Shown piece by piece: positions 16,431 through 42,500 of a stretch of 64,000 bases of DNA. This stretch comes from Macrostomum hystrix. Taxonomy: Eukaryota; Animalia; Platyhelminthes. How positions within the stretch are numbered: position 1 is the first letter of the stretch; each line of letters opens with the position of its first letter. Both the position numbers and the translations under genes were made by a program. Where the stretch lies: assembly GCA_950097015.1 (NCBI GenBank), contig CATNEN010000001.1:15624001-15688000 (forward strand), read 5' to 3'. The notes under the pieces are model-generated. The model had not been told where the DNA came from. It was given only the letters and a program-made list of their open reading frames with translations, and did not search any database.

Positions 16431-17689
16431 TTGGCTATATATAGGCATTATATATGATATATATTATCATGCTAAATTCCCCCTTTCTTTTCTAGTCACA
16501 CTCCTCAGCAGACTTCTCTTTTCTTATATGCCTCATTCACATTGTCAAATCTTATTTTGAATCAAATCCTATATGACATAAAAGTATATTTCAAATTAGA
16601 TCCATTTTGATAGTTCAAAATGGTTAGCTCATATCAATGGCTTATTAAATATTAATGGATCAATTTCTAATCTCCTTTCTTTGTCTTAATGATTCCAATT
16701 CTGATCAGATCCTATTTCTCATCTGACCTCTTTTCTTAGTAATCCATTTTGTATCATTCTTCATTATAAATGCATGCCTGACAATTTATCTTTTAAAATA
16801 GAATAAGGCAGGTACCAGGTGTGCAGATTCATGAATCATGGGACTGGTCTTTGTCCACTGAAACATTTTTTGTATTTCTTCAATTGCAAAACACATTGAA
16901 AACAACAAAACAACAACAATTGAGTGAGCATCTGGCAAAATTATTATTATACAAATACATATCATTATGACATTATAAGAAAGCAAACTCCAAATGTAGA
17001 GAATTCAGTTCAATGAAAAAAGAAAAAATTGCATTGCACCTAAAAATATTACCCACAAACAGTAAACATGATGCACTTGCAGAAGGCTCCGCCAACAAGA
17101 CAGTATCATTGCACAGTTCATTGCATTTGACTGCAAGAATAATGGTGTCAATCCTACTGCTTGTTGGCTTGCTTTACTCTGCACTGCTGGTCAGAGGCAT
17201 TCACTGGGGCAAGTTAAGTTCACGCACTCAACGTCACACAAAAAGCTTAGCTATCACAAGTCTCTAGGTTTACTGAAGCTGCTTCAAACCTCTCTCTCAT
17301 GGCTGCATACCCTCAGTTTTAGAGTGGAAGAACCTCTGAATCGTGAAAAAGCAGCGAACACGTTATTTCAACCACAATCTCAAGGCCCATTGATATGCAG
17401 CCAACCTGCTATATATTCACCTAATATTTACCTACATTAATTTCACTATTACTTATTAACTTTCATGGCACAACTAAATTGGGATCCGATTGTATCCGAT
17501 CCTATTCTGGTTTGCCTTGATCCCAACTCGTAGCAGAAAATTTTCATTACCTTACGGACTAACTAACTCTTACTAATCATAATTCTGGTAAACAATGAAT
17601 CCAATTTTCCATTCTTCAATGATCCCATTCGTATCATGCCATGAGCCCAATTTCATTATGCGATAATTCCAATTCTGGTTTGCTATGAT

Positions 17690-18860
17690 CCCAATTTAGT
17701 ATGCAAGGATCCCAACTTAGTTATGCCAAATGATCCCAATTACGCTAAGCAATGATCTTAGTTCTGTTATGCAATGAACCCAATTAGGCTAAGCAATGAT
17801 CTCACTTCTGTTATGCCACAAACACAATTTAGCTAAGCAATGATCTCACTTCTGTTATGCCACAAACACAATTTAGCTAAGCAATGATTTAGGATTGATA
17901 TATAAGATTCTGTGAATTTAGGATTGGGATCTAAGAGATTCTATGAATTTAGGATTGGGATCTAAGAGATTCTCTGAATTTAGGATTGGGATCTAAGAGA
18001 TTCTCTGAATTTAAGATTGGGATCTAAGAGATTCTCTGTATTTAGCATTGGGATCTAAGAGATTCTGTGAATTTAGGATTGGGATCTAAGAGATTCAATG
18101 AATTTAGGATTGGGATATAAGAGATTCTTTGAATTTAGGATTGGGATCTAAGAGATTCTGTGAATTTAGGATTGGGATCTAAGAGATTCAATGAATTTAG
18201 GATTGGGATCTAAGAGATTCTATGAGATTAGGATTGGGATCTAAGAGATTCTATGAGATTAGGATTGGGATCTAAGAGATTCAATGAATTTAGGATTGGG
18301 ATATAAGAGATTCTATGAATTTAGGATTGGGATCTAAGAGATTCTGTGAATTTAGGATTGGGATATAAGAGATTCTATGAATTTAGGATTGGGATCTAAG
18401 AGATTCTAAGAATTTAGCATTGGGATCTAAGAGATTCTATGAATTTAGGATTGGGATCTAAGAGATTCTGTGAATTTAGGATTGGGATCTAAGAGATCCA
18501 ATGAATTTAGGATTGGGATATAAGAGATTCTATGAATTTAGGATTGGGATCTAAGAGATTCTGTGAATTTAGGATTGGGATCTAAAAGATCCCATGAATT
18601 TAGGATTGGGATATAAGAGATTCTATGAATTTAGGATTGGGATCTAAGAGATTCTGTGAATTTAGGATTGGGATCTAAGAGATTCTGTGAACCCAATGAA
18701 CAAGTAATGAACCCAATTTAGCTAGCAATGCTCTCAGTTCTGTAATGCCAAACCCAATTTTACTAAGCAATGATCTCAGTTCTGTTATGCAATGAACCCA
18801 ATTTCGCTAAGCAATGATCTCAGTTCTGTTATGCAATGAACACAATTTAGCTAATCATTT
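17690..18860. repeat. Composite minisatellite: ~26 x 31-bp core flanked by ~44-bp repeats
   Basis: Core GAATTTAGGATTGGGATCTAAGAGATTCTAT (~17885-18691). Flanks GCAATGATCTCAGTTCTGTTATGCAATGAACCCAATTTAGCTAA. Confidence 0.95.
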
Positions 18861-19080
18861 TGCTTAGCTAATCCCTGATCCCAATTCCATTATGATCCCA
18901 TCTAATTTTAATTTATTAGGTGAATAAAGCAGGGTTTACCTGATATGTCTCATCGGGCCGTATTATACATATCAGGTTAAACTACTTGTGATGGCTATCG
19001 AACTCAGATGCGCTACTGGCAGACAAAAATGAACTCAAGCATTACTCACGTTAATTGCATCTTTATTAGTCTTTCAAGTC

Positions 19081-21856: not shown

Positions 21857-24800
21857 CACCGGAAGGTTGTTACGCCTGTGGTCGGTCATTCAGGAGCGAC
21901 ATCGTGCCTCTCAAGTGCGCGGTGGAAAATTGCGCGCACCAGTGCCATAAGCAGGAGTCGTGCAGTGGCCTTCGCCGGTACCAGGACCATGGCACCTGGC
22001 GCTGTCAAGATCACCTGGCAGCAGGGACTACGGCGGACCGCCCGACGCCGGCCAACGCCGACAGAGAGCGACGGCCTGGGAACCCGGCGGTCTGCCGCAC
22101 CTGTGCTAGGGCCATCCGCCAAGGCACGCTCCCCCTCAAATGCGACCAAGATAATTGCGACGCCTGGTGTCATCGGACCACGGCGTGCAGTGGCATCCCG
22201 CGCTACAAGGGGTGCCCGCGCTGGCTGTGCCCCGAGCATGTGCCGGTGCCCACGGCAGCCTCCCTGGTCGGACGCCCCACTGGTGCCAACCAGAACGGCA
22301 ATCGCCAAGGCTCCCCGGCCGCGCCACGCTGTTGTGGGGGATGCGGCCGTCGGGTGGCGACCAACATCAACCCGATTCACTGCAGCATGTGCCAGGCTGC
22401 GTATCACAAGTCCTGCTCTGGTCTCCCGCGCAAGGCCGCCGAGTTTGCGCTGGCCCGCCAAGCCTGGCAGTGCGGCAAGTGCGTTATGGGGCCTGGTCAA
22501 GACACTGAGCCTGCGCCGGACGAGATGGCGCCCTGTATCCGCCTCTCCACCACTGACCGTATCAGCGCCCTCAACATTCTGCAGTGGAACGCTGACGGGC
22601 TCCTCGCCAAGGTACCGGAGCTGCTCGACCGCATCAACACATGCAGGGCTGATGTAGTGGCGATTCAGGAAACCAAGCTGCGCTCTCAAGATATTACGCC
22701 TCGTTTCCCGGGATATGCTGTTGTCCGGGCGGACCGTACCGAGGCGGATGGAGGTGGAGGCCTGCTCACGCTGGTGCACGAGCGCCTGGCCTTCAAGCAG
22801 GTCCCTTCCAAGCCTGCCAGCGCGATCGAGATGCTGCGGGTGCGCATTTACCTGGGCCCCAAGAAGACTCTGGACCTGGACAATGTGTACGCCCCGCCAA
22901 ACCGCAATGGTGGAGAGGATGTGGACGCTCTCTGGCAGACTATCCCGGCGGGGGCTGATGTCATCTGCGGCGACTTCAACGCTCATGCCCCCCTCTGGGA
23001 CACTGAGCAGCCCACGGATGCTAGAGGGGACGCTCTCATGGACTGGGCCACTGGCCGGGCGCTCGCGGTGCTCAACGACGGCGACCCGACCAGGGTCAAT
23101 CGCGGTACCGGTGGCCTCAGCTCCCCCGATGTCACGCTGTGCCGTGCAGACTGGCACGACAAGGCTGAATGGAGCGTGCAGGACGACCTTGGCTCGGATC
23201 ACCTCCCTATCTTTGTCCGGCTTCGCTGCGCCGCAGCCACTATCGCCCGTGCGCCCAGACGCGCGTGGCGCAAGAATGGAGTCAACTGGCAAGCTTTCAC
23301 GGAGGATGCCGAGAATCAGGTGGCTGACTTCAGGAGCTCGGGGGTCTCTCTGACACAGCGGGTGCAGCGCCTGACCAAGGCCATCATCGACGCCGCATAT
23401 CGGCATGTCGGGAAAACGACCTACAAACGCACAGCGCGGCCCTGGCTGTCACATCAGGCGCGTGCAGCCATCCGCCGCCGCAATCGCCTCCGCCGAGAGG
23501 TTGGCAGTCACCGAGAGGAATGGTTACAGGCGTCTGCCGAAGCAGCGCTCCTCATCAAAGAAGGCAAAGAACGTTGCTGGCAGGATTTTCTCGCGGATGC
23601 GGACTTGTGCCACGACGCCCCCAAGGCTTGGCGGCTCATCAGGAGCCTCAGCGGGACACCCGATGACAACCAAGCTAACGAAGCTCTGGTGCACCAGGGC
23701 AAGGTCTTCTGCGATAATCGTGCCAAGGCGGAGCTATTTGCTAAGCACTACGCAGCGGTCAACCGGCTGACGTTCAGCAAGGCCGATCGTGAGCTCAACC
23801 GTAGTGCCAAGGAGGCCACGCGCAACTGTGGCGGCGACGATGACAGCTGCAGCGACATCACCATGGTGGAACTTGAGGCGGCCATTGAACAACAGCGGGC
23901 TAATGGAGCCTGCGGCCCGGACGACTTCTCGCCACGCTTCTTCAAGGCCCTTGGACCTTTGGCAAGGCGCGAGCTGTTGGAAATCTTCAACCGTTCCTTC
24001 AAGACCGGGCAATGTGTGCAAGCCTGGAGGAGGGCGACCATCATCCCACTCCTCAAACGTGGCAAACCAGCGAGTGACATGGTATCCTTTCGCCCAGTCA
24101 GCTTGACCTCTTGCATGGTAAAGCTCTTGGAGCGCATCATCACAGCCCGGTTGTACTACATGGCCGAATCCCGGGGATGGCTGGCTCCGCAGCAGGCAGG
24201 CTTTCGGCGATTCCACAGTTGCGAAGATCAGGTGCTCAACGTGGTGCAGGGCATCAGCGATGGATTCCAAAGCTCCCCAATGCTGCGCTCCGTCATGGCT
24301 TTCCTGGACTACAGCAAGGCCTATGATAAAGTCTGGCGTGAGAGGCTACTGATCACTTTGATTGAGAAGGGCGTCCCAGGCACCTACGTCCGCTGGATTC
24401 ACTCCTTCCTGCAGAATCGCGAGGCCAGGGTGTGCCTCCAAGGCGAGGTCAGTCGGTTCCACAGGCTGCGCCAGGGGCTGCCACAGGGCTCGGTGATCGC
24501 CCCCTCCTCTTCATCCTGTTCCTCGATCCGGTCGTGCAGACCATCCCACCAGAGGTTCGTGTCTCCTTGTACGCCGACGACATTGCCGTCCGCAGCCAGC
24601 ACCACGCTAAAATCACGGTGGCGGCCCAGGTTCAGGAAGCCGTCACCCGCATTGCCGATTGGAGCGCCAGCCGCAAGATGGTGCTCAACCCCACTAAAAG
24701 CGAGTGCGCCTTCTTCTCCACGGACACGCACGAGGCTGCCTGGCAGCCCTCTATCACCCTGAACGGGGAGAACATGCCTTTCAACGACAGCCCGCGGTTC

Positions 24801-26274
24801 CTTGGAGTTCACCTTGACCGCTCTCTGGCCTTCCGGAAGCAGGTGGACGAGGTCTGCCGCGCGATCGGCAAACGGTGCCGTATCCTGGCGTGTCTGTCTG
24901 CGAGGGCGTGGGGATGGCCTAAAGAGAGCCTCCTCCGGACCTTCAAGGCACTCCAGATGAGCGTGCTCCACTACGCTGCTCCGGCCTGGCAACCCTGGTT
25001 GGCCGACTCCGCGGTTGCGCGGCTGCAACGTGCGCAGAACAACGCGCTCCGCATTGTCACCGGACAGCTGCGTTCCACGCCTACTGAGGCCCTTCACCTC
25101 GAGGCAGGAATTTGTACCGTTGCCACCACCAGGGACCAGCTTTGCCTTGCCGCATACGAGAAAGCTCTGCGTCTGCCAGCTGACCACCCGCGGCGTATGG
25201 CTGCCGTGCCTGTCGTCGCGCATCGCACTGCTAGGGGAAGCTGGCGTAAAAGGGCCGTTGAACTGCTAGCCAAGCTCCCAGACGATTTGGATCATCGCGA
25301 GATGCTACCCCACCTGCCCAGTTGCCCGTGGGTGCCTCGAGCTGCGGGCCTCAACGTGACCTGCGATCTCGTCGGGGCGGTAGATGTCGACACATGCCAA
25401 GACGACATGTCGGGACGGCTCTGCGCTGAGGCGGCCATCCGCCGCTATGAGGCCGACCTGGTCATTTACACTGATGGGTCGGCCCTAGGCGGCTGCTCCG
25501 ACGGTGGCGCCTCGCCGTCGTCACCCGCGGTGACCCGGCTGCACCTGAGGTGCTGGACACCATCATGGCCAAGGGCAGTCGCATCACCTGCTCGTATGAT
25601 GAAGAGTGCCGCGCGCTCAGTTTGGCTACCACCTGGATCCGACGGCACGAAATTGCAGGACGTGTCGTCATCTGCAGTGACAGCAGATCTCTGCTGTCGG
25701 CCCTGGCTGGGAAAGGCCCAGCGCGCAGCGCCCTCCCGGATCTTCGCACTCCAGCGGCCGCTCTCATGCTTCAGTGGGTTCCGGGGCACTGCGGGCTGGC
25801 TGGTAACGAGCTAGCCGATGAGGCGGCCAAGCAGGCGGCTGCTGCTCCTGCCGACAACTCCAGCGCGCCAATTTCGATGTGGAGTGCGCTGGCGGCCGCC
25901 CGACGTCACATTGCAGACCCGCCCATCAGACATGCCCGGACAGCTGCCGTCTACGGCGCCCTGGACCGCCAGCGGGACAGGGCTGAGATTCGCACCCGTC
26001 AGGACGCGGTGCTCCTGGCCAGGCTGCGTTCGGGCCACTGTAGCCTTCTGCGGGCCTATAGCAGCGTTATCAACCCGCACGCCGACCCCACCTGCCTCCG
26101 TTGCGGTATGGCCCCGGAAGACGTGGAACACTGGCTTCAATGCCCGGCCCTCCGCAGGGAGAGACTGGCTACTTTCGACAGTGATGACCTCAATCTTAAT
26201 GTGCTGACGTCCGACCCCGCTAGGTCGGTGGCGCTGGCGAGACGGAGCTGGTAGCTCACTCGGCGCCTCTTGCC

Positions 26275-26290
26275 CCAACAACAACAACAA

Positions 26291-26366
<76 letters not shown>
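26275..26366. repeat. (CAA)n(CAG)n microsatellite between the two LINEs
   Basis: About 30 trinucleotide units. Similar tracts at 21538-21577 and 30088-30122. Confidence 0.97.
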
Positions 26367-29300
26367 GGGACCGGGCCGACCCGGTGCGTGAGTACCATCA
26401 TACCCACGCGGCAAGTGACTACCCACGCGGCAGCGATGGGCCGATGGACTGGGCCACAGTCACCATCATTCCAAAGGGCAAAGGCAAGTTTAACATCACC
26501 TCCGTGTACGCACCACGAAACAGATACCAGCGGCAACAAGACAACTGGGAGCCCGACTGGGACCTCATCCCGGTCACCACGCGCGGTGTCATCGGCGGCG
26601 ACTTTAACGGCCACGGTAGCTGGGACGAGCACCAACCGGACGACGACAGAGGAGATTGCATCGAACAGTGGGCGCTCCGACGCAGCCTACACCTCTGCAA
26701 CCTCTCGTCCGCCCACACGAGGACAAACCCGGCCACAGGAGGCAAGTCCAGTCCGGATCTAACTTGGTGCTCACCTAACCTCACCGCAGTCTGCCGTCCC
26801 AGCTGGCGGACAACCGAGTGTATCGGCAGCGACCACCTGCCCCTACTCTACGAGCTGACTAAGACATCTGCCAGTGGAAAACGGAATCGCCAGACGCGCT
26901 GGTGTTTCAAGAAAGCCGACTGGAAGGCGTACAAACAATCGCTCGACAACCGAGAGGCTAAGCTCAGGCCGAGCAAACCCGAGTCAGGTTCCAGCGTGGA
27001 CTTCGATCACCAAAGGCTCAGCGACAACATCCTGACTGCAGCCCTGGAGTGCATCCCCAGAGGAGCCCGCAGCACCCCCGGTAAGCCCTTCTGGACAGAA
27101 GCCTGCGACAAGGCCTGCAAGGAGAACGCGCAAGCCCGCAAACAAGCAGAAACAAGCAGGGAAAAAAGCGACCTAGAAGCGTACCAAGCGACCCGCGAGA
27201 ACGTCCGCAACACGATCCAGAGAGAGAAAGCCGCTTTCTGGAAAGAAAAGACAGCGTCGCTGAACATCAACTCTGACCTCTTCGCTATCATGCGGTCTCT
27301 GCGCGGCGACCCAGCACCACCCCCACCGAACGCGGCGCTCAAGATCCCGGCCGACCCGACCCGTGGCGGCTCGCCCAGAACCGCCACCAACGATAGAGAA
27401 AAGGCAGAAGCGTTCTGTAGTCTCTACGCCAGCATCTCACGGATCCCACGGGACCACGACGACCGCTCCATCAACCACCAGGCCTATAGAGCTATGCAAG
27501 CACCCTGCTGTAACAACAACGATCGTAAGGGGCTTTGCTCAGCCTTCTCTGCAGCGGAGCTAAAGAACGTCCTGACCGGGCTTAAGTCCGGCAAGAGCCC
27601 CGGCGACGATCAGGTTACGAACGAGATGCTGAAGCACCTCGCAAGCCCCACGGAGAAGAGACTGCACGATCTGGTGAACAAGTCGTGGCTGACCGGAAAA
27701 TGCCCGCACCAATGGCGGCGCGCCACAATAATTCCTATCCCGAAGCGCGGCAAGCCAGCGGAGGAACTCGGCAGTTACAGACCGGTCGCCCTCACCAGCT
27801 GTATCGCTAAGGTCGCGGAACGACTGGTCTACCACCGTCTCAGCTACTTCTTGGAGTCCAACGGCAAGATCAGTGGAGTGCAAGCCGGGTTCCGGAAGGG
27901 CAGATCATGCGAGGAGCAGATCGCCCGCATCTCACAACAAATCTTCGATGGCTTCGAAAGATCCCCAGCGATGCGATCTGTCCTTGGTCTCCTGGACTTC
28001 TCCCGCGCTTACGACAGGGTCTGGAAGAGAGCCCTCCTCCTGAAACTTAAAGAGGTCGGCACCCCACCCTGTGTCCTCAGGTGGATCAACAGCTTTCTGG
28101 CGGATAGAAGGGCCAAGGTCCGAGTAGGCACCAGCAACAGTAAGGAACGCACCTTCCGCGAGGGGCTCCCACAAGGCAGCGTCCTGGCCCCGCTGCTATG
28201 GCTGGTTTACATCAATGACCTACCAGACACCATCCACGCCGCTTCACCGGACACGAGTGTGAGCCTTTACGCCGACGACAGCGCGATACTCGCTACCAAG
28301 GAAAAACTTCAAGAATGCAAGAACATCCTGCAACCGGCTCTGGACGCCATCGCCGGGTGGTGTAAGAGATGGAAAGTCGAGCTCAGCACCGCGAAGTGCA
28401 GTTACAGCACCTTCACTTTATCCCCGGCCGAAAACAGAGGCAAGACAAGACTCGACCTCAACATCAACGGAGACCCACTGCGGTTCGAGGCGAACCCGAC
28501 CTTCCTAGGGGTCAAATTCGACGACCACCTCGGTTTCGGAGAGCATGCCAAGGATGTCAGACGGAAAATGGCAGCTAGACGCCGACCGATCCAGATGCTC
28601 GCAGACAGACAAACAGGCGCCGACCAGAAAACACTGCGCGCAGCCTACATCGCAACCTGCCGCTCCATTGCGGACTACGGCAGTGCCATTTGGTTAACGA
28701 GCGCAGCACCAAGCAACCGGGCACTTGTGGAGAGGCAGCAGAACGCGTGTGCACGCCTAATCACCGGCTGCGTGATGCCCTCTCGGACGGACAAACTGCT
28801 GGCCGTCGCCAACCTGCCGCCCCTCCACCACATCGCCGCGGAAAGAGCTAGCAACCTCCGCGAGAGGATGGCCAGACTACCGGCCGACATCCCAGCGCAC
28901 CAAGCAGCAACCGCGAACGAGCGACCAAGACTCAAAAACCGGACCTACGAAGCCGCAATGAAGAACCGGGCCAACGACGGCCAGCGCGGGGAACGCATCC
29001 CGGACGCGCTCTCGGATGCCAACCGCCCGTACCGCGCCTGCTGGCGCCGCATCGCGCAAGAGCTGGAATGCAGCACCACGCTTGAGGCCCACCCAAGAGC
29101 ACCAACGGCAATCGGCCCAGCACCGTGGACCATCAGCAGAAGCCTAGAAGTCCGCTTCGACACATCGGCCGCCAAAGAAGCAACCCGACAAATGCCAGCA
29201 GAACTTCGCGCCGCCCTCGCCGAACCAACCGTGTCCCGTCTCACGGAGCACGTCATCTGGACCGACGGCTCGGTACAGGACGGTTGCAGAAACGGCGGGG

Positions 29301-30088
29301 GAGCAGCAGTCGCACAATGGCTTCCACCAGAGGCAGCCCGCATGTCTGCGGCGGGCGCCCTATGCAGCAGCTTCACGGCCGAACTCACCGCTATCCGAGA
29401 GGGCCTCCGCCTCTGCAACACCGCGGCAGACAGACCCCCGGACATCACCATCGCCACCGACAGCCTGAGCGCCATCACGACCCTGAGCGCCGGGCCACTT
29501 AGGCAGAGGGACTCAGTAGCAGCCGACTGCTGGCAGCTCATTCTGGACCTGATCGAGCTAGGCACCAAGATTGGCTTCTGCTGGGTTCCGGCCCACTGCG
29601 GTATTACCGGCAACGAGGCCGCCGATCAGGCGGCGGCCAGGGCGGCAAAACTAGACCAAAGTCAGGTCCCGATCCAGTTGGACGCCGCCAGAGCAGCCAC
29701 CCGACGCTGCCGGCGCGCCCTGGATATCATAGCAGTCGGCCCTTTCTGGAGCCCGCCCCAGGGTCTGCCGCGGAAGCAACAGGTCCTGGTCAACCAACTT
29801 CGCGCGGGCGCCAGCATGGTCGATAGAAAGACCCGCTACCGTCTCGGTGTCGACGCGTCCCCGCTGTGTCCCGATTGCGGCGAGGTGGACAGTGTCGACC
29901 ACGTCGTCCTCCACTGTCCAAGAGGCGACCGCCACCGAGCCCTACGCGGAATCCCGGCCGAGAACTTGATGGAGAACCCGGCCGCGGTCGTCGAGCTCCT
30001 GCGCAGTATGGGGCGCCTCTAGCGCCCCCGCCCTTATCGGTACTCCGGATCGGGTGCGCCCTGGAAACGAAAGAAAAAAAGAAAAAAG
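26367..30088 (+). mobile_element. Second, divergent I-group/Ingi-like LINE, 5'-truncated within APE, ORF otherwise intact
   Basis: SVYAP, GDFNGH, SDHLPL, GLPQGS, YADD, WTDGS, ATDS, WVPAH..GNEAAD, CPDC..HVVLHC; stop at 30022; short 3'UTR and A-rich tail. Confidence 0.93.
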
Positions 30089-30506
30089 CAGCAGCAGCAA
30101 CAGCCGCAGCAGCAGCAGCAGCGGAATAATTAAATTCAATTTGTTTGTGGAATTAACTTGATATGATTTCTTGCTTTTTTTATTTGTGTTTGAGAATTTA
30201 AAGAATTCTAAATAAATAAAATAAATAATTCTGTTTACTGGATAAATAAGTGTTTCGTGTTGCTTTTTCTTACTCCTAAATGAAAATAAGAAACTTAACT
30301 GACACAGCTCATTGCTATGATCAATTTAGAACCTAAAATGAAGTTTTGGAGCTTAATTGAAAGTTTTTAACTAAACAAACATCCACATGAAAGTATGCAA
30401 AATAACATATTATAAATAAGGGAATTCAATGACAACTGATGAGTTTAATAATTGCTTTGTGAATACTTACTTACAAAGACAGTAGAGATGATGAATTCGC
30501 AGATTG

Positions 30507-30805
30507 CTCCGCCAACAAGACAGTATCATTGCACAGTTCATTGCATTTGACTGCAAGAATTGCATTCTCTGAATTTAGCATTGGGATCTAAAAGATTCTC
30601 TGAATTTAGCATTGGGATCTAAGAGATTCTGTGAATTTAGGATTGGGATCTGTTATGCTCAGTTCTGTTATGCCACAAACACAATTTAGCTAAGCAACGA
30701 TCTTAGTTCTGTTATGCAATGAACCCAATTTAGCTAATGATTTTGCCTAGGTAATCCCTGATCCCAATTCCATTATGATCGCATCTAATTTGAATTTATT
30801 AGTGT
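30507..30805. repeat. Internally deleted copy of 17087-18920
   Basis: 54-bp match to 17087-17140, three 31-bp satellite units, then a match to ~18730-18920. Confidence 0.85.
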
Positions 30806-32307
30806 TCAGTTCAGCAAGTTTTGCCCCCCTTCGGGGACTTCCCGGTCCGCAACAACCACGCCAGCTACCGAATTTTTAATATTGCCTGTGCCACATCTAC
30901 AACTTAACAATTTCTGTAAAGCGACCTTAGTTAAGCGTGTGCCATTGCTTTTCGGTGACCTTGTAGGCTGGGCTTCGACGCTGGGGGTGATTAAAAAACC
31001 CGGGAATGTAAAATACGGTTGCTGGAACGGTAGATGTTATTTTGTAACGTGACAGTGAAAAGGAGATGTGTGCCAATTATAAATTCTTGAACTTGGGACC
31101 AAAATACAACAAATAGGTAAAAAAAGTGGCAGCTGTTTGGCTTTCAGGCTTTTTTGTTCAGTGTGAAAGGTAAAAATATAGATTTTTTAAACAAAAATCG
31201 GTTGCTGCAATTTACTCAGTGTGGCACAGTTGTGCCAACTCGAAAATATTGACCTAAACGAAGGTATCCATGTGTGCCATACTTCAGAATACATTTACCC
31301 ACAACATTTCACACCTTTTTGGCAATTTTGTTGTGAGCAGACAATCGGAGCATAATAGCACAAATATTTTCGTTGCATGATCAAGCTCTTGTACGATTAT
31401 AGCGAGCAAGACTAATGCACATAAAATAAATAGTGCGAATAATAAAATACCTTACCATTTGGTTAGCAGCATAAAGCCTTTTTATACTGGTGTTTGTTTA
31501 CTTCGATAGAAAAGAATAAATTCAAAATTCAAGACGTTGACCACCCGAGCTACTTTAAACTGCGCAAAGCAAATAAAATAATAGGAATCTCGAATATTGC
31601 CTTCCTCCTATGGGCTTATATATATTTTTGGAGGAATCTCGAACATTGCCTTCCTCCTATGGGCTTGTATATATTTTTGTATATATACTTATATTTATAT
31701 TTGTATATTTTGTATATATATATATATATATGTACTCTATAATTTAGTAAAGGTGGTGTTCTAATTTGTCGAAATATTACAGATCCTATACTAGCTATAA
31801 GCCTTGCAATGCCTTAGTTGCCTAGTTGAGGGTGAAGATGCATTTTTACAATGTATGTAGTATTTATAATATAATGCATGCTCCACGAAGTTAATGGTCC
31901 TTCTAAATATAGCTTTTTTCTATGGCCTTCTCTAAGCTGATTTTATAATAGGCCTTTTCCTATAGAAAGGATACTATACTATAAAAAACCTCTGCTAAGT
32001 TGTTTGCTTACCCAAAAGAAAGCAAAAGTTGTTTGCTAAAGAAAAGTAGGCTAATAAATGGATGCATAATTGTGAATATACAAAGATCCATCACCATGTT
32101 AATAATGATAGGCATAAAGGTAAATCTTGAAAGTCTAGTCTATTAATGTAAAAGGATTTATTTTGTCTATAATTAACCAAGGTGTTCTTTTGTCACATTG
32201 GTTTTTGGGGGTAAACTTTGAAGAAAAGTATACTGGTAGCAATCTTACTAAATATATTTAGCAGGAATCAAAATGTTGCACTGCAAATGATATTTTGGAT
32301 TTGATAC

Positions 32308-33238
32308 TTCGATCCAGCTTGTAACAACTCGATCCAACCTCAATCCAACTTCGATCCAACTTCTAACAACTCGATCCAACCTCAATGCAACCTCGATCCA
32401 ACTTTAATCCAACTTCTAACAACTCGATCCAACCTCAATCCAACTTCTAACAACTCGATCCAACCTCAATGCAACCTCGATCGAACTTTGATCCAGCTTG
32501 TAACAACTCGATCCAACCTCAATCCAACCTCGATCCAACTTTAATCCAACTTCTAACAACTCGATCCAACCTCAATGCAACCTCGATCCAACTTTGATCC
32601 AACTTCTAACAACTAGATCCAACCTCAATCCAACATTGATCCAACTTTGATCCAGCTTGTAACAACTCGATCCAACCTCAATCCAACCTCGATCCAACTT
32701 TAATCCAACTTCTAACAACTCGATCCAACCTCAATCCAACATTGATCCAACTTTGATCCAGCTTGTAACAACTCGATCCAACCTCAATGCAACCTCGATC
32801 GAACTTTGATCCAGCTTGTAACAACTCGATCCAACCTCAATCCAACCTCGATCCAACTTTAATCCAACTTCTAACAACTCGATCCAACCTCAATGCAACC
32901 TCGATCCAACTTTGATCCAACTTCTAACAACTAGATCCAACCTCAATCCAACATTGATCCAACTTTGATCCAGCTTGTAACAACTCGATCCAACCTCAAT
33001 CCAACCTCGATCCAACTTTAATCCAACTTCTAACAACTCGATCCAACCTCAATGCAACCTCGATCCAACTTTGATCCAACTTCTAACAACTAGATCCAAC
33101 CTCAATCCAACATTGATCCAACTTTGATCCAGCTTGTAACAACTCGATCCAACCTCAATCCAACCTCGATCCATCCTCAATCCAACTTCTAACAACTCGA
33201 TCCAACCTCAATGCAACCTCGATCCAACTTCGATCGAA
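32308..33238 (+). repeat. Tandem array inside left TIR (~10-11-bp subunits with higher-order structure)
   Basis: GATCCAACCTC/AATCCAACTT(T)/CTAACAACTC units. Confidence 0.95.
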
Positions 33239-33338
33239 GTATATTGATTATCGAATATGATGAAGCATAGCGAAGTGTTATCATATATCCGCCAGTTCTT
33301 GTCTTCAGTTTCGTTTATTTCTTTTCACACTTTTTCAG

Positions 33339-34313
33339 GAGAAGCTGCTGAAGAGTTCCTGCGACGCAGACCTTCCGGATCCCGGGCCTGTTTTACCCTG
33401 TCCTACGCTGCCGTCTATTGTTGTCTTCTCTCTGTCTGACGGCCAAGCAATTGACACTGTTTGTCAACGTCTCTGTGCGTGTACTCGAGCTTTTAGTGCC
33501 CTGAAGATTCGAGTTCGCGAAGGTTTCCGTCGATGCGGTCACGATCAAGTTGCTGTCGTACAGCTGGTCGCTGATTCGACTAAAGCAGCCTTCCTACACA
33601 GTGTTTACGGCAGCGGTGGAAAGTGCCAGGCGGAGCATAGAAGAAACGGAGCTATTTGGTTGCAAGCAGCAGTTCATCCAACAGTTCTAAGTCCGACTGA
33701 AAATGCTTCTTTCTCTTCGCGCCGTCAGCCTGCAATTTGGCGCTTGCCTTCAAGTCGGCCGGTACAGCGTTTGCGTCAACAGGTACTGCACGATATTCGG
33801 CAGTTGATTGCTGTCGCCGACATCACTGCGCTCCGAACACTATCTGCTTTTATTCGCTGCTTGTCTAGCATGCAGCGAATGCCTCAAAGGCGGCGACGAC
33901 GAACACAGAACGGAAACCAACTGTATGCGGACGAGCGGCAGCAGGAAGAGGAAGAGAGGAAGAAGCAGCAGCAGGAAGAGGAAGAGAGGAAGAAGCAGCA
34001 GGAAGAGGAAGAGAGGAAGAAGCAGCAGCAGGAAGAGGAAGAGAGGAAGAAGCAGCAGGAAGAGGAAGAGAGGAAGAAGCAGCAGCAGGAAGAGGAAGAG
34101 AGGAAGAAGCAGCAGCAGGAAGAGGAAGAGAGGAAGAAGCAGCAGCAGCAGGAAGAGGAAGAGAGGAAGCAGCAGCAGGAAGAGGAAGAGAGGAAGAAGC
34201 AGCTGGTTACAAAGACGAGAAAGCGAAATATGGAGATACTCAGTCGGACAGATCCCTTAGCTCCAAAACGAGCATTGCGGCAGCGTCTGCAGTTGGTCAA
34301 GAATAATCGGTAA
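33339..34313 (+). CDS. Second gene of the Foldback element; unknown protein with (QQQEEEERKK)n charged helix
   Basis: Frame open from the acceptor TTTTCAG|GAG at 33339 to the stop at 34313 (~324 aa). About 8 charged repeats at 33938-34202. Start codon not identified. Confidence 0.55.
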   Translation, partial: EKLLKSSCDADLPDPGPVLPCPTLPSIVVFSLSDGQAIDTVCQRLCACTRAFSALKIRVREGFRRCGHDQVAVVQLVADSTKAAFLHSVYGSGGKCQAEHRRNGAIWLQAAVHPTVLSPTENASFSSRRQPAIWRLPSSRPVQRLRQQVLHDIRQLIAVADITALRTLSAFIRCLSSMQRMPQRRRRRTQNGNQLYADERQQEEEERKKQQQEEEERKKQQEEEERKKQQQEEEERKKQQEEEERKKQQQEEEERKKQQQEEEERKKQQQQEEEERKQQQEEEERKKQLVTKTRKRNMEILSRTDPLAPKRALRQRLQLVKNNR

Positions 34314-35243
34314 TAAAATCATATGGTAATGTGCTTAAAAAGGTATGCTAGTACATTTTTACGTCTCCGTTGCAGGCATCTTAGTAACCCTGAAGTCGTA
34401 TTTTTCTGACAAAAACGTATCCTACATTTATTTGTCTAGTTTCAAATCAAGTAATGATGTTTATAAACTTGTCTTCCTACAGTAGTTTATAGTCACTAAC
34501 TATGTATAGATAAGCTCTATGTACTTCAGACAAAAGTGTGACAAAAGTCTTGAGGTCCCCAATTGTCTGTGCCTCTATACAGATACAAAATATGTATCTA
34601 TTTACCCTTCCTATATACCCTGATACTTAAAATGCACGTCCCTGCTTTCGTTCATTTAATATATACTTTTTGCGAGTTTTTCGACGTTAATTCTATTTTA
34701 CAAGGACTGATGAACTTTGTTTGACTAAGCTTGAAAACCTGGTTCAGTTGTTCGCTTTACGTACGGTTCTAGTGTAGTAATTTTTCGCAGTAGCTAATTA
34801 CGCAATGTTACGCAATAATACATGTTGTACTTTGAATGTACTTCTTATTAGACAGCTGTCACCTTCACGAAAAAGAAAAATAAATTTATTTGGTGAATGT
34901 GCACGTTCGGGTGCCTCAATGAAAAAAAGACTGAACAAATTGTGATTTCAGTACATTTCAATCAACTTTTACTCTGTGCTTTTCACTAACAAAAGGTGGT
35001 AAATGCTATTGATTCAATAAAAAGAAACTGGCAGTAAATACAGCACGTACACTTGTGCCTTGACACACGTAGCTAACTGTACAACAACTTTTGGAGAAAA
35101 CGGCTGCCTATAAACAAGAAGAGAGGTTGGATGGAGTCGTTACAAGCTGGATCAAAGTTGGATTGAAGTTGTTTCACGTTACATTGAGTTGTTAGAAGCT
35201 GGATCGAAGTTAATATATTCAGAATCGGTCTCAAATTGTATCG

Positions 35244-38200
35244 CTACTGGCCTGATGTTTCCTCCGAGTTAGTAATCGTGTAAATGTACAGGTTAGCCCT
35301 GTTTCCCAGAGGTGGCTGGCGTCCACGCTCTACAGCGGCGGTCATGACACCCTTGCTTCTTGCCAAGTCGTCGTATTTAATAGTTCCTGAGGCGTACCAG
35401 ATGCGGGACAAATAGTGCCCCCCTTCCTTGAAAGTTGTAGCACGATGTTGATATCTGAAGATTGTGAATTTGCCGTTACAGCATAGAAGTAAAGTTAGCA
35501 ATGCTTATGTATTAGTGCATGCAAGACAGCGATATGTAGAGCCTTTAAAAATGAACTAAGAATACTACGTTTCTCTCTTACTGAATACTGCAGTCCGAAA
35601 AGGGGCGAACCACTTGAGAAGGGGCAGCTCGGCTGGCGCCCAATGGATCAGAGTCTGTGGAGGAGATGACTAGAACCGGCGGAGGGCTGAACTGAAACTT
35701 CGGAGCCTGACTTCGACGCACGTGATCGCAGACTGAGCACGGCCCATAGGACTCAGAAGAAAGAAAATCTCGCAGATAATCCTCGACTGTGCCTCCAGCT
35801 GCACAGTTACTTCCAATAGTGATTGCGTGTCCATAGGAAAGTTGCTCTGGATTTGGGCAACGCGGGTTGAGGCACCGGCTTTGATACACTAGTCTGTGCT
35901 TTGAACCAAGGAGCTTCATACATACGTCAAGCTCACTGCCGAAGAGGCCAATTTCGATTTTCTGATTTGTCCTGATGAAACGTTCACTGCTGAATGCGTC
36001 GAGTTGAAGAAGAAGCTTTGCTCGTGCATGCAAAGCTTGCTTCTCGGTGGTGGACTGCGATGCTTCGTTCAGAAAAACTACCAATGGATCCTCAACAATA
36101 TGTTGGAGACTTGCTTTGAATCCAGGTTCATCCAGATAGGCTATGGTTAAGGCCGTGAGCAAGTTGTCTGCTGTGCAAGCGTTGTACACGTATACGCTCA
36201 TAGATCCGCCTCGAGAATCTGGCACACCAGTAGCCAAACCGGAGCTCCTCAACGTGGCAAATTCCAATGCCTGTCGAGGTGGTCTTCCCTCTAAAGGATA
36301 GGTCCTGGAAGTCTACAAGAGAGAAATGGAACAGGAACACAAAGTTATCACCGTCTGTTAAATGGCCACCAACTGACGAAACAATAAGCACTGTCCTACG
36401 TAGACCATTGTACTTATGGTGTACGTTATGTCCGTTGCAATAAATGAAATAAATGAAATGTAAAATACATTAATAATAAAGAGTAATATAAAATACAAGA
36501 AAATAAATACGTAATGCAATAAATAATGAACAATCCACTACTTGCCGACGGTACATAAGCCGGTAGACGACGCTTTTTGTTTACTACAGGTTGCAGCGGG
36601 ACATCTGCAGGCCGAGCCTGTTGAGAGTTGACCATTGGACAAAAGATGTCAGACTTTCGTTTCCGGGTTTTATTCGACAATGGCACCGTTGGCGCACCTT
36701 GCTGTGGCTGCGACTCTGACGCTGGTGACGAATGCTGCTCTGGCTGCGACTCTGACGCTGGTGGCGAATGCTGCTCTGGCTGCGACTCTGACGCTGGTGG
36801 CGAATGCTGCTCTCGCTGCGACTCTGACGCTGGTGGCGAATGCTGTGGTGGCTGCAGCTCTTCTTCAATATCATCTTCTTCCAAAGAAGTCACACCTGTT
36901 ACACGGTACATGTCTCTCTTGAACAGAATTTCGTTCCCATTGTGATGAGAATGGAGCGCCTGGATGAACTCAGAGAGACTGACTTGTTTACTCTCAAAGA
37001 CACTGTTCTTCATAAGGCCAATCCAGCGCTCCGTGTGCCCCTCCGTAAATCGTGAACTGCTGGGCATAATGCCGCAGATAAGAGGGAGATACGGAGTGAA
37101 TGTATTGGTTATGCGTTCAGCCAAAGCCGGACATACATAGGCGTTCAGACTATCAGTAGACTCGTCAAACGGCAGTGCACTCACTTCCAGTTGAACTTCT
37201 TGCCGGATTTGTTCAGCCCGCTGCCAGAATGGGGACCGGCGCATTATGGTTCCGTCTGCATTGACTTCTATTTGTGAAGATTCGTTCGTCTCTTGATCCA
37301 GAGTCTCGAACTCGGCACGGACGCTCTCCATGTTGCTCATTACTCTTAGAAATTTTTTCGGACAACATCCTAGATGCCGATCCATTCTTTCAACTACGGC
37401 TTCCGTAGGAGCCATGAGCACAAGGTAGATGGCTCTCAACAGCCTGTCAGCTGTTTGAATGCTGTCGATCGCTACCATGCACACCATAGACCGCAGCCAG
37501 AACTGTTTGACTGCCCTGTTACTGCAATTGGTTACTTCCTTCAAGCGAGTCATCTCCTTGACTAGATGACTTCGGCCAAGACCGATGACAGGAAGGGGAT
37601 CCCAATCGCTGTCCTTAGTCAAGTGATGAAAGCATTCTTTGATGTAGAGCGACAGCGATAGACCATGAAAGCAGCCGATGAGTCCGTGTAAAGTGGCAAA
37701 ATTGAAGTCTGTAACCACCTGCGAAACGCGAACTGTTGACAAAAATGTCGTACATTCTCTAAACCAAACGTCCAGGCAAAAGCGCAGGGTGATTCCTGTC
37801 TGAGATGTCGATAGAATCTCCAACAATGGCATCACTTTCCCACCAACGGTAGGGTTCTGAAGCACCAGAGCGTGATAGTAGATGGGCTTGGTGCAACTGC
37901 TGGGGCGCTGATGGATTGGAGCAGCAGTTGAATCCATTCCCATACGTATGGGCCAGCCCCTCAGCTGCATCTCCCGTAGACTCTGAAAGGGACGGGAATG
38001 GAATAGAATGATGGTCTCGGCCCGACCCTCACTCTGGATAACCTTTCTGATATACGCGGGTTGTAGGACCCTCTCAAGTCGGCGCAGTTCTATCAGGTCA
38101 TCCATGTCTGGAACTCCCAGCTCAGCTCTGCGCAGTCGCTCAGCTGCAATGCGTAGGGCCTCTGACGAAGGCACCTCACTGAGGGGTTCGTTGGCGGCAA

Positions 38201-39124
38201 TGGCCGCTGCGACCCTGTAAGAGTTCGAAACCAGCGTCGATCTCGCGAGCTTATATCGCCGTTCACCAGTCAGCCGCCGACTTCGAGCCGCAGGGTGGTT
38301 CTCCAATGGCGCAGTGACTGTCCGGAGTTCCCATGACGTCAAACTCGCATCTTTGGCTTCCACAATAAACGTTGCTGGACAGGTAGGCTCGCAGCAGTAG
38401 ACATGAGCGTAATGAATCCCCGTCTTTCTGCGAAACTTTCCTACTTTTTTCGCGAGACAGCACGGTTCAACCGAAAGAGCAAAAAGGCGAACCACGTCGC
38501 TGAACCAATCTGGCTTTAAAACACCGTCACGGAGAAGTCCTGCGGGCTCGCTGAAGCTCTGGTGGAAGATAGGCAGAATTGTCGAGGAGGAAGAACTGAA
38601 AAGAGATGGTTTTAAAGGAAGACATTGTCAGTGCCAATGTCATCTGCCAATGACATCTGACTAAATAAAGGGCACGGACAGTTCGCAACAGGCATGCAGA
38701 AATAGTACGCGAAACAAAAAGGCTATCTTACATGCAGCGCGTCTCATCAGTTGAAGAGTCTGCGTTACATTCAGCTGTTTCGATGGGAACGTCCTCAGAA
38801 ATGTCCTTGTAATTACGTAGCAGAAATGTATAGACGTACTTTTTGTTTACATCAGAAGGAGGAACGTGAAAAAATCTGCACAGACGCGGCAAGCGATCGT
38901 CATCTGACCGATGATGGCTAGGAAGTGGAGAACTAATATACTCCTCAGGGTCAATACCGCACAGCTTGAAGAAATCAAGCAGACTTGAACGAGTCAGTTG
39001 CCGTTCTAGAATAAGGAGAGACGAATAAAAAACGAATGTACTATACTCGTATAGTATATCAACTACGCCTTTCACGCCCCAGATTCTGAGCCGTTGTAAA
39101 CTTACTTAAAGAATCATCCGCCAT
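35244..39124 (-). CDS. NOF-like MULE-type DDE transposase with C-terminal USP-like cysteine protease domain, ~1094 aa, 5 exons
   Basis: Exons 39124-39106, 39005-38732, 38595-36546, 36312-35582 and 35454-35244 sum to 3285 nt, all phases compatible (third intron GC-AG). Kozak CCACCATGG. Motifs MGMDSTA, IYYHALV, VVTDFNFATLHG, RSHLVK, TEGHTERWIGLMK; C-terminal NACTADNLL and GHYLSRI..KYDDL. Confidence 0.78.
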
Positions 39125-39267
39125 GGTGGACCAAAACTGAAAGGTCCTGAAATTGAAATTGAAAGGAGGCGAAACTATAAATAACAATAAATAAACGAAA
39201 CTGAAGACAAGAACTGGCATATATGATAACACTTCGCTATGCTTCATCATATTCGATAATCAATATA

Positions 39268-39882
39268 CTTCGATCGAAGTTGGATCGAGGTTGTATCGAG
39301 GTTGGATCGAGTTGTTAGAAGTTGGATTAAAGTTGGATCGAGGTTGGATTGAGGTTGGATCGAGTTGTTACAAGCTGGATCAAAGTTCGATCGAGGTTGC
39401 ATTGAGGTTGGATCGAGTTGTTACAAGCTGGATCAAAGTTGGATCAATGTTGGATTGAGGTTGGATCGAGTTGTTAGAAGTTGGATTAAAGTTGGATCGA
39501 GGTTGGATTGAGGTTGGATCGAGTTGTTACAAGCTGGATCAAAGTTGGATCAATGTTGGATTGAGGTTGGATCTAGTTGTTAGAAGTTGGATCAAAGTTG
39601 GATCGAGGTTGCATTGAGGTTGGATCGAGTTGTTAGAAGTTGGATTAAAGTTGGATCGAGGTTGGATTGAGGTTGGATCGAGTTGTTACAAGCTGGATCA
39701 AAGTTCGATCGAGGTTGCATTGAGGTTGGATCGAGTTGTTAGAAGTTGGATTGAGGTTGGATCGAGTTGTTAGAAGTTGGATTAAAGTTGGATCGAGGTT
39801 GCATTGAGGTTGGATCGAGTTGTTAGAAGTTGGATCGAAGTTGGATTGAGGTTGGATCGAGTTGTTACAAGCTGGATCGAAG
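39268..39882 (-). repeat. Tandem array inside right TIR (shorter than the left)
   Basis: Reverse complement of the 32308-33238 array, with fewer units. Confidence 0.95.
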
Positions 39883-41352
39883 TATCAAATCCAAAATATC
39901 ATTTGCAGTGCAACATTTTGATTCCTGCTAAATATATTTAGTAAGATTGCTACCAGTATACTTTTCTTCAAAGTTTACCCCCAAAAACCAATGTGACAAA
40001 AGAACACCTTGGTTAATTATAGACAAAATAAATCCTTTTACATTAATAGACTAGACTTTCAAGATTTACCTTTATGCCTATCATTATTAACATGGTGATG
40101 GATCTTTGTATATTCACAATTATGCATCCATTTATTAGCCTACTTTTCTTTAGCAAACAACTTTTGCTTTCTTTTGGGTAAGCAAACAACTTAGCAGAGG
40201 TTTTTTATAGTATAGTATCCTTTCTATAGGAAAAGGCCTATTATAAAATCAGCTTAGAGAAGGCCATAGAAAAAAGCTATATTTAGAAGGACCATTAACT
40301 TCGTGGAGCATGCATTATATTATAAATACTACATACATTGTAAAAATGCATCTTCACCCTCAACTAGGCAACTAAGGCATTGCAAGGCTTATAGCTAGTA
40401 TAGGATCTGTAATATTTCGACAAATTAGAACACCACCTTTACTAAATTATAGAGTACATATATATATATATATATACAAAATATACAAATATAAATATAA
40501 GTATATATACAAAAATATATACAAGCCCATAGGAGGAAGGCAATGTTCGAGATTCCTCCAAAAATATATATAAGCCCATAGGAGGAAGGCAATATTCGAG
40601 ATTCCTATTATTTTATTTGCTTTGCGCAGTTTAAAGTAGCTCGGGTGGTCAACGTCTTGAATTTTGAATTTATTCTTTTCTATCGAAGTAAACAAACACC
40701 AGTATAAAAAGGCTTTATGCTGCTAACCAAATGGTAAGGTATTTTATTATTCGCACTATTTATTTTATGTGCATTAGTCTTGCTCGCTATAATCGTACAA
40801 GAGCTTGATCATGCAACGAAAATATTTGTGCTATTATGCTCCGATTGTCTGCTCACAACAAAATTGCCAAAAAGGTGTGAAATGTTGTGGGTAAATGTAT
40901 TCTGAAGTATGGCACACATGGATACCTTCGTTTAGGTCAATATTTTCGAGTTGGCACAACTGTGCCACACTGAGTAAATTGCAGCAACCGATTTTTGTTT
41001 AAAAAATCTATATTTTTACCTTTCACACTGAACAAAAAAGCCTGAAAGCCAAACAGCTGCCACTTTTTTTACCTATTTGTTGTATTTTGGTCCCAAGTTC
41101 AAGAATTTATAATTGGCACACATCTCCTTTTCACTGTCACGTTACAAAATAACATCTACCGTTCCAGCAACCGTATTTTACATTCCCGGGTTTTTTAATC
41201 ACCCCCAGCGTCGAAGCCCAGCCTACAAGGTCACCGAAAAGCAATGGCACACGCTTAACTAAGGTCGCTTTACAGAAATTGTTAAGTTGTAGATGTGGCA
41301 CAGGCAATATTAAAAATTCGGTAGCTGGCGTGGTTGTTGCGGACCGGGAAGT

Positions 41353-41974
41353 CCTTCGGGGAGCAGAAATAATTAATATTCGTCGAATATATACCCTTTA
41401 GCAGGAGTACTTTAAGTGTCTTTCTTAAGCTTAAGCTTAAAATAGGAATTTTTGGAGATCGTTAATAACGCATTTTAGGTAAAACAAAACTATCAACTTT
41501 TTACAGTTTTTTAGTTTGGAGCCCTGTATATGTCAACGTGTTTGATAAAAATTATTTTTTTTATTTAGTTTATAAAACTGTTGAGATCACTTTTTTAGTT
41601 GTTACTGAAAATAAATTAAATAATATTCCAAGAAATTGCGACTTTCCGAGAAATGACTTGCTTTATTCCGATTTTCTTGTTGCTTGTATTGCTCATGTGT
41701 ACTACAGTTTTATACACATCCCGAGAAATTTTTTACTTTCTTCATTTGTAAGTGAATTTCTTAGCCCTGCTCATCGTACTAACTGCGACTGCAATGTTCC
41801 GAACAATAAGTAGCTCAGCATTGCAACTATTGCCCTTGAATGAGGCCCCTCTTATTATAATAAATGACTTAAAGAGTCAGTTCAATGCAGCTATCTCATT
41901 GTGAATGGACTTTGCAAAAGCAACTGGAGCTACATCCTTCGACCTTTGGTTTGACACTTTTAATAAAGCTAACA
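41353..41974 (-). mobile_element. Second copy of the Helitron-like 3' region (continues from 30813-30836)
   Basis: Nearly identical to 15806-16430; ORFs 15994 and 41538 differ at 2 aa. Confidence 0.85.
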
Positions 41975-42500
41975 TCTATATATATAAAAGTGAAAACTGT
42001 GTGTGTGTGTGTGCAACCTTTTGTCTTTATAGACGCCGAAACCGCTCAACCAAATCGCACCAAACTTTGCACATACCTAAAACCACCTACGCTGAGTGCA
42101 ATAGGCTACTCAAATTCCCTAAAAATCATTTCCTTCCTGCTCAAAAGTGCAAAAAACTGCTCAAAAATCGTCAAAAAATCACTCAATTCGACACATCGTC
42201 GCCCCACTTTGTCAGATTTTCTCCAAATTTGATCCACTTACACTTTACATGTTTTCCAACAATGCTGTCAATTTTGAACATCTCTACTCAATCCAGAGCA
42301 AAGCTGCATCATCTCAAAGTGAGTCACTTTTTGTTTTCCGAGGACAGCCACCCCAACTCCCCTCCGCCACTCTGCGGGCCAAATTTTATTACAGCCACCC
42401 CCTCCCTTCCCCGGGCGCAGAAGCCCCAGACTGTACATTGTATTTCAAGCCGTGAATGTACACAGCCCAAACCCCTAGACTGTCTACTGGCCCCCAAGCA
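41975..42500 (+). mobile_element. Non-autonomous Helitron-like 5' portion
   Basis: A|TCTATATATATAAAAGTGAAAACT(GT)n begins exactly at the A^T of the AACA^TTGGC seen at 16427-16435. The same head occurs at 56792. 3' end not found. Confidence 0.6.

Follow-up and report, generated by a model that had tools for sequence, protein, structure and literature searches.

A young foldback transposon of Macrostomum hystrix, probably an autonomous member of the Mutator superfamily, with a predicted ubiquitin-specific-protease fold in its transposase

A 64,000-nt window of the genome of the flatworm Macrostomum hystrix (C1:15,624,001-15,688,000; positions below that bear no contig name are counted within this window) contains a foldback transposable element of 10,516 bp at 30837-41352. 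A repeat finder reports one inverted pair, 30835-32920 versus 39269-41354, of 2,086 nt that are 100% complementary, and register-shifted satellite matches extend the arms inward to 33288 and 39219. The left arm (30837-33288) measures 2,452 bp, the right arm (39219-41352) 2,134 bp and the enclosed loop 5,930 bp, in agreement with a sequence-only reading of this DNA that had given arms of ~2.5 and ~2.2 kb around a ~5.9-kb loop, and whose coordinates are all correct. Each arm is built in three parts, a unique outer domain of ~1.47 kb, a satellite of 53-bp units and a 53-bp inner domain, and the termini of the element are ACT...AGT. The loop carries two genes, both of which start just inside an arm and run inward: a transposase gene on the minus strand and a second open reading frame (ORF2) on the plus strand (Table 1). 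At the left junction GCCCCCCTTCGGGG passes into ACTTCCCGGTCCGC, and at the right junction GCGGACCGGGAAGT passes into CCTTCGGGGAGCAG, while the uninterrupted sequence of the target region, GCCCCCCTTCGGGGAGCAG, lies at 15791-15819. Over 638 bp the right flank (41353-41984) is 98.3% identical to 15806-16443; for the left flank, the match to this paralogous repeat starts only at 15791, indicating that insertion took place 15 bp into a repeat that is also present as a second, unoccupied copy. The empty target claimed by the sequence-only reading was thus found where that reading had put it.

The M. hystrix assembly comprises 220,453,370 bases in 42 contigs (PMC10468722, Table 1). Whole-genome searches recovered eight 100%-identical matches to the element's first 600 bp and exactly eight occurrences of its 24-nt terminus (four forward, four reverse; none for the reversed-pattern control), and the genome holds exactly four copies, designated A (this window) to D, at different loci on three contigs. 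All four are flanked by a perfect 9-bp target-site duplication (TSD), different in each case (CCTTCGGGG, ATCGCAGAA, CGCATCGAC and GTCTAAAGT for A to D). The 9-bp length proposed earlier therefore holds genome-wide, and since the duplications of copies B-D are unambiguous, the 7- and 5-bp readings that the palindromic target of copy A had left formally possible fall. The unique 1.47-kb arm parts are nearly identical in 8/8 arms, and the coding exons are 99.6-100% alike between copies; those of A, B and D contain no indels, and in copy C exons 3 and 4 do. Only in copy A are both arms and the loop uninterrupted; its gene has five private substitutions, three of them non-synonymous. The left arm of copy B is interrupted by a 1.29-kb insertion bearing an 11-bp duplication of its own, copy D has a 3.3-kb insertion ending in (TAA)n together with a ~460-bp left-arm deletion, and copy C ~1.4 kb of extra internal sequence besides a longer satellite array. 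The element is young and has been very recently mobile in M. hystrix.

The transposase gene has five exons, and its structure is based on contigs of the public sequencing run X2 aligned to window 33300-39299. These contigs join the exons and end on the minus strand in an untemplated T16 at 34946, marking the poly(A) tail. The exon phases fit without a break (19 + 274 + 2,050 + 731 + 208 nt), yielding 1,094 codons and a stop; this full-length model is coordinate arithmetic, and the searches and folding were carried out exon by exon. Run X2 is listed as 'DNA?'; as all four genomic copies retain the introns, present and colinear, the joined form in X2 must derive from RNA. A loose end of X2 at 35123 was considered as a possible deletion derivative and rejected, because a satellite-like 89-bp fragment lies at this point of the 3' untranslated region (UTR) in every copy. 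The labels of the runs are in conflict: X2, with the spliced transcripts, is labelled organism B and X1, the best match among the DNA runs, organism A, yet X2 carries the haplotype of copy D. One species named twice, mixed samples, or a second species with a near-identical element would each produce such a conflict.

The identity of the transposase is not apparent from routine comparison. Pfam searches of every ORF and exon returned low-complexity matches only and no family for the transposase, word-based searches with the protein and with a 61-sequence profile gave no match, and searches of PDB sequences with the 689-aa ORF, P0013 and P0014 gave nothing useful. Exhaustive phmmer searching found 238 relatives among 1.8 billion representative proteins, the best of which is a hypothetical protein of Macrostomum lignano (33% identical, E 1.5e-62). 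Six residues that are invariant or nearly so in an alignment of 61 sequences (D221, D296, H343, N484, E522 and K529 in exon 3 numbering) are all present here, with a D-D spacing of 75 and a D-E spacing of 226. Profile-profile comparison (hhalign) with ORFs of the same genome that are positive for PF10551, the Pfam MULE family (Mutator-like elements), gave a 91% probability (E 1e-6), with the first and second D and the CxxH motif in register. Two of the relatives give weak PF10551 matches themselves, and the Atlas neighbours of the transposase are MULE clusters. An AlphaFold2 (AF2) model (predicted local distance difference test, pLDDT, 77; predicted template modelling score, pTM, 0.70) finds its best solved-structure match in the IS256-family ISCth4 transposase (Z 12.2, 242 residues aligned, root-mean-square deviation 5.2), followed by the P element transposase (Z 10.5) and Hermes (Z 10.2). 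Residues 47-92 form, within this larger model, a four-stranded sheet with conserved Cys and His residues, which may correspond to the N-terminal WRKY/GCM1-type zinc-finger DNA-binding domain of MULEs. The profile match, the IS256 structure match and the 9-bp TSD together place the element in the Mutator superfamily, which is characterised by TSDs of ~9 bp (8-11 bp) and by a D, D, E triad with a C/DxxH motif following the second D. With high probability, it is a cut-and-paste foldback DNA transposon of the MULE superfamily, probably autonomous and very recently mobile in its host. Its DDE transposase would recognise the ACT...AGT termini, and probably also the 53-bp subterminal repeats, excise the element and insert it at 9-bp staggered cuts.

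Other accounts of these data carry far less weight. The 100% identity of the arms over 2,086 nt is what would be expected if the fold-back were an inverted duplication made by a long-read assembler, yet the same termini occur at four loci on three contigs with four different perfect 9-bp TSDs, and an empty paralogous site is present, which together exclude such an artefact; lineage-specific satellite variants are also kept apart between the copies, and sister families share the design, leaving this explanation a negligible probability. It is somewhat less improbable, but still very unlikely, that the element belongs to another superfamily, a Galileo-like P element or a hAT element, and merely resembles a MULE. 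The P element and Hermes transposases lie within ~2 Z units of the best structural match, and the D-D and D-E spacings are similar to those of the P transposase. However, target-site duplications are 7-8 bp in the P superfamily and 8 bp in hAT, versus 9 bp in 4/4 copies here; Pfam, reporting no family, gives no match to a THAP or hAT dimerisation domain; and the profile homology to PF10551-positive ORFs with the motifs in register, the weak Pfam MULE matches of two relatives and the MULE clusters among the Atlas neighbours all speak for the Mutator superfamily.

Several observations weigh against the element being an autonomous Mutator transposon. Direct hmmscan with Pfam MULE (PF10551) is negative for this protein, and the Cys of its CxxH motif is replaced by Gly, as in 18/61 relatives. 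There are only four copies and no derivatives; arm-only forms, which the sequence-only reading had proposed to look for, and MITEs (miniature inverted-repeat transposable elements) of the family were absent from the genome in the whole-genome terminus and 600-bp searches. No excision event, footprint or polymorphic insertion was observed. The six X2 letters that differ from the window are exactly those of the copy D haplotype, so that the transcript matches copy D and not copy A. Upstream of the acceptor at 39147-39148, the X2 contig runs into 255 nt that were not found in the window or in the whole genome (first 30 nt, 2 mismatches allowed) and are not the spliced leader. Some of these points would fit a genuine foldback MULE of which copy A is non-autonomous, being mobilised in trans by a related family, or of which the whole family is dead. 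The low copy number, the Cys-to-Gly change, the three private non-synonymous changes of copy A, the copy D haplotype of the observed transcripts and the presence in the genome of two sister families with intact long ORFs can all be cited for it. Against it, 3/4 copies have an intact ORF, the protein retains its catalytic residues, and transcripts of the gene are spliced and polyadenylated; moreover, the termini of the sister families share only ACT with this element and their transposases are 29-33% identical to this one, making cross-mobilisation unlikely. A non-autonomous copy A is thus an unlikely alternative, though one of appreciable weight, to a probably autonomous Mutator transposon. 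The youth and possible autonomy put forward earlier are borne out by the near-identity of the unique parts in eight arms, the retained catalytic residues and the spliced, polyadenylated gene.

Table 1. Features of the element, its target site and its genomic copies (window positions unless a contig is given)
Feature	Position	Strand	Remarks
Unoccupied target	15806-15814		inside 98%-identical paralogous repeat beginning ~15791
Left 9-bp TSD, CCTTCGGGG	30828-30836		same 9 bp once at empty paralogous site
Left arm unique terminal domain, 1,472 bp	30837-32308	+	terminus ACTTCCCGGTCCGC; near-identical in 8/8 arms of 4 copies
Left arm satellite	32309-33235	+	17.5 units of 53 bp (106/159-bp higher order); Tandem Repeats Finder
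Left arm inner domain, 53 bp	33236-33288	+	mirror of 39219-39271
ORF2 (second gene)	33339-34313	+	324 codons + stop (34311-34313); acceptor 33337-33338
Transposase exon 5	34946-35454	-	coding part 35247-35454, stop 35244-35246; USP His box GGHY...YDD; 3' UTR; poly(A) site 34946
Satellite-like 89-bp fragment	35123-35211	-	in transposase 3' UTR
Intron	35455-35581	-	GT-AG (run X2 joint)
Transposase exon 4	35582-36312	-	USP-like domain; Cys box (VYNACTADNLL); zinc-ribbon-like CxxC pair
Intron	36313-36545	-	GC-AG (run X2 joint)
Transposase exon 3	36546-38595	-	Cys/His-rich beta-sheet N-terminal domain; DDE core; 12-aa tandem repeat; basic stretch
Intron	38596-38731	-	GT-AG (run X2 joint)
Transposase exon 2	38732-39005	-	transcript joints + frame
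Intron	39006-39105	-	GT-AG (run X2 joint)
Transposase first coding exon	39106-39146	-	ATG 39124-39122; polypyrimidine-AG acceptor 39147-39148
Right arm inner domain, 53 bp	39219-39271	-	
Right arm satellite	39272-39880	-	11.5 units of 53 bp; equal unit number in all four copies
Right arm unique terminal domain	39881-41352	-	
Right 9-bp TSD, CCTTCGGGG	41353-41361		
Copy A	this window		10,516 bp
Copy B	C1:23,295,625-23,307,704		12,080 bp
Copy C	C12:1,272,900-1,285,250		12,351 bp
Copy D	C11:4,463,035-4,476,224		13,190 bp

The C-terminal tail of the transposase is predicted to adopt the fold of a ubiquitin-specific protease (USP, peptidase C19) and to constitute a protease-like domain. Exons 4 and 5 are colinear with the C-terminal part of several relatives and keep the Cys box (NAC..D..L) and the His box (GGHY..YDD). 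They align with P0014, a full-length relative that was folded, at residues 807-939 (E 6e-4) and 1037-1097 (E 7e-4), and residues 790-1101 of P0014 match USP46, USP18 and USP12 with Z 15.6-15.7 over ~230 residues, the 50 best PDB rows for this segment all being USPs. Pfam UCH gives no direct match, and those Atlas neighbours that have a named family are UCH clusters. Other modules occur among the 39 long relatives, namely a PHD finger in 17/39 and a Ulp1 protease (Peptidase_C48) in 13/39; a YqaJ-type recombinase/exonuclease domain, present in 4/39, adds a third type of accessory module. For the DDE core, a quick tree was built from 61 rows, after exclusion of 44 hits with tails too short to classify and 47 covering <280 core residues. 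USP and Ulp1 tails are clustered on this tree, requiring a minimum of 2 changes, a number as low as which was obtained in 0/500 shuffles. The transposase of the window falls in an all-USP group of eight (Shimodaira-Hasegawa-like approximate likelihood-ratio test, SH-aLRT, 88), where its neighbours are the M. lignano protein and one of the sister families of M. hystrix. This clustering indicates that the tail is a trait of a clade and not a one-off capture. A full-text literature search found no paper describing a USP domain on a cut-and-paste transposase, which does not prove that there is none. A 36-bp tandem repeat of 4.1 copies at window 36700-36845, which separates the DDE core from the USP tail, encodes QHSPPASESQPE repeats; the repeat at the same place in sister family 3 differs (SASASGPSVPG), and the M. 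lignano protein P0001 has yet another.

The second gene receives the spliced leader of the host, the AUG of which appears to open its frame. A contig of run X6 (labelled organism A) ends at 33338 with 21 unmatched letters, CGAAGACTCAATTTATTGCAT; with the G at 33338 included, these form the final 22 nt of the 35-nt Macrostomum spliced leader as published (PMC8629364). The acceptor site is preceded by a polypyrimidine tract and AG, and the final ATG of the leader is in frame with the 324 open codons of ORF2, a frame in which ATG, GTG and TTG are all absent ahead of 33660. According to the authors of the M. hystrix genome paper, the spliced leader probably supplies the start codon. The ORF2 product is charged and of low complexity, with QQEEEERKK repeats and a basic tail; it has no recognisable Pfam domain, and it shows no significant similarity to the second ORF of sister family 3 (E 1.3). 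Contigs from the ORF2 side reach 34927, 19 bp short of the transposase gene's poly(A) site, indicating that the two genes converge.

The satellite of the arms has a period of 53 bp with higher orders of 106 and 159 bp (Tandem Repeats Finder), and occurs nowhere else in the genome, save for the 89-bp fragment in the loop of each copy. The right array counts 11.5 units in every copy; the left one has 17.5 in copies A and B, 21.5 in copy C and 7.5 in copy D. Between the lineage of copy A and that of B, C and D, 24 array positions differ, and the same positions are concerned in the left and right arms, the arms of any one element differing from each other at only 3-5 positions. Changes in one arm have thus evidently been copied to the other, and the arms appear to evolve in concert by such copying, possible routes for which would be conversion between the inverted arms or repair synthesis with one arm as the template for the other. 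The 28 mismatches between the arms of different copies were also considered as evidence of two arm haplotypes; this was rejected, as the unique parts are near-identical and what differs are satellite variants that recur in mirror image in the two arms.

At least two further families of the same design are present in the M. hystrix genome, with transposases 33% and 29% identical to this one. Family 2 is ~11.2 kb long, with 2.4-kb arms and an 89-bp satellite, and has two copies; in family 3, which is 13.35 kb long, the arms measure 2.5 kb, the satellite 111 bp and the TSD apparently 8 bp. The termini of both begin with ACT, the only stretch they have in common with this element. In family 3 the USP Cys box is likewise found at this position, and the reading frame stops where exon 4 does, as would fit an intron shared in position. 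Families 2 and 3 share a second ORF at 48% identity. One copy of family 2 lacks the last 7 bp of the right terminus and the other lacks a clean TSD; flank exchange between the copies, or decay, would be possible causes. A degenerate transposase fragment with stop codons, 51-60% identical to the transposase here, lies 23 kb away from copy B at C1:23271330-23272704 and is related to the family but older.

The surroundings of copy A contain further repeats. The host repeat that received the insertion (15791-16443; 30813-30836 plus 41353-41984) starts with AGCAAGTTTTGCCCCCCTTCGGGGAGC, a C4-TTCG-G4 hairpin-like motif, and the left flank of the element also has a 31-bp tandem repeat that is abundant at window 17700-18900. 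Directly left of the element, within a block of 60-64% G+C (22000-30000), an ORF of 1,250 aa at 26270-30022 with endonuclease, reverse transcriptase and RNase H domains represents a non-LTR (long terminal repeat) retrotransposon. An Rfam scan of window 30000-42000 gave no match, and a bacterial promoter and terminator scan is not meaningful for a flatworm host.

The element resembles the Foldback (FB) elements of Drosophila in design, which does not imply membership of the FB family. The arms of Drosophila FB consist of tandem repeats to their tips, whereas the outer 1,472 bp of each arm here are unique sequence. Long inverted arms with tandem repeats, a possibly coding loop and a 9-bp TSD are shared with FB and FB-NOF, as described in the papers on the elements Tm1 and Tetris (PMC3169594; PMC4079207). 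The label 'FB-NOF-like' given by the sequence-only reading consequently stands for the foldback architecture and not for the family, since the outer 1.47 kb is unique and the element is a MULE apparently nearest to the Rehavkus type. Rehavkus is a MULE-allied Repbase group of foldback elements with 9-bp TSDs, long terminal inverted repeats (TIRs) and variable subterminal tandem repeats, of which the PHD finger is a published hallmark; its described hosts are arthropods and annelids, with Rehavkus-1/3_TC of Tribolium as examples, and its published TIRs range from 26 to 400 bp (PMC6446971, Table 1). Compared by published description, the 9-bp TSD, the long TIRs and the subterminal tandem repeats are alike, and the PHD finger does occur in the 17 long relatives mentioned above. 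The transposase of the window, however, has no PHD finger match in Pfam and carries a USP-fold tail, the arms are 2.1-2.5 kb long and the host is a flatworm. None of the relatives found bears a Rehavkus name. Rehavkus-type foldback MULEs are probably the nearest described kin, and in view of the missing PHD finger the element is called Rehavkus-like and not a member.

Other systems share single traits with the element. Maize MuDR carries mudrA and mudrB convergent from the TIR-proximal ends, with a 9-bp TSD and TIRs of ~220 bp without satellites. Two convergent genes that each start just inside an arm, and the 9-bp TSD, are thus common to both, but the second gene here is without similarity to anything searched (the second ORF of family 3, Pfam). 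Plant KI-MULEs and Ulp1 (C48) transposases likewise have a ubiquitin-like-modifier protease attached to or carried by a MULE, the module here being of the USP (C19) fold and not Ulp1. Tetris of Drosophila virilis has TIRs composed of a terminal domain (<=866 bp), internal tandem repeats and an inner domain, and a TSD of 8-10 bp (PMC4079207). It is like this element in its three-part TIR and its few complete copies (PMC4079207), but Tetris has no coding sequence and its repeats have become dispersed in the form of free satellite arrays, whereas the element here is coding and its satellite is confined to the four copies. Tm1 of Meloidogyne and the Phantom MULEs have FB-like composite TIRs, a 9-bp TSD and a MULE-type transposase in the loop (PMC3169594); they possess FLYWCH and Pfam-recognisable MULE domains, neither of which Pfam finds here, and lack a protease tail. 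Since beetles, flies and nematodes are known to have foldback MULEs whose arms bear satellites, the kind of element is not new.

Four points exceed routine annotation: the predicted USP-fold tail, the gene that appears to borrow its AUG from the spliced leader, the evolution of the arms in mirror image, and the fact that copy A is complete. A bolder reading, possible but distinctly tentative, is that USP-tailed foldback MULEs form an undescribed clade with a ubiquitin-type protease in its transposition machinery and Ulp1 in the sister clades, that the flatworm elements have adapted to the RNA processing of the host, a second gene without a start of its own taking the AUG of the spliced leader, and that the arms are actively copied from one another. 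Most described foldback elements, including Tetris and most copies of FB and Tm1, are without their transposase. Here, a complete and apparently working foldback transposon comes together with its own transposase, a gene model backed by transcripts, four copies that are dated and an unoccupied site, and the genus of its host, Macrostomum, serves as a laboratory model. The element could be used to ask whether satellite number tunes transposition, how the identity of the arms is kept up, and what role a USP protease may play for a transposase.

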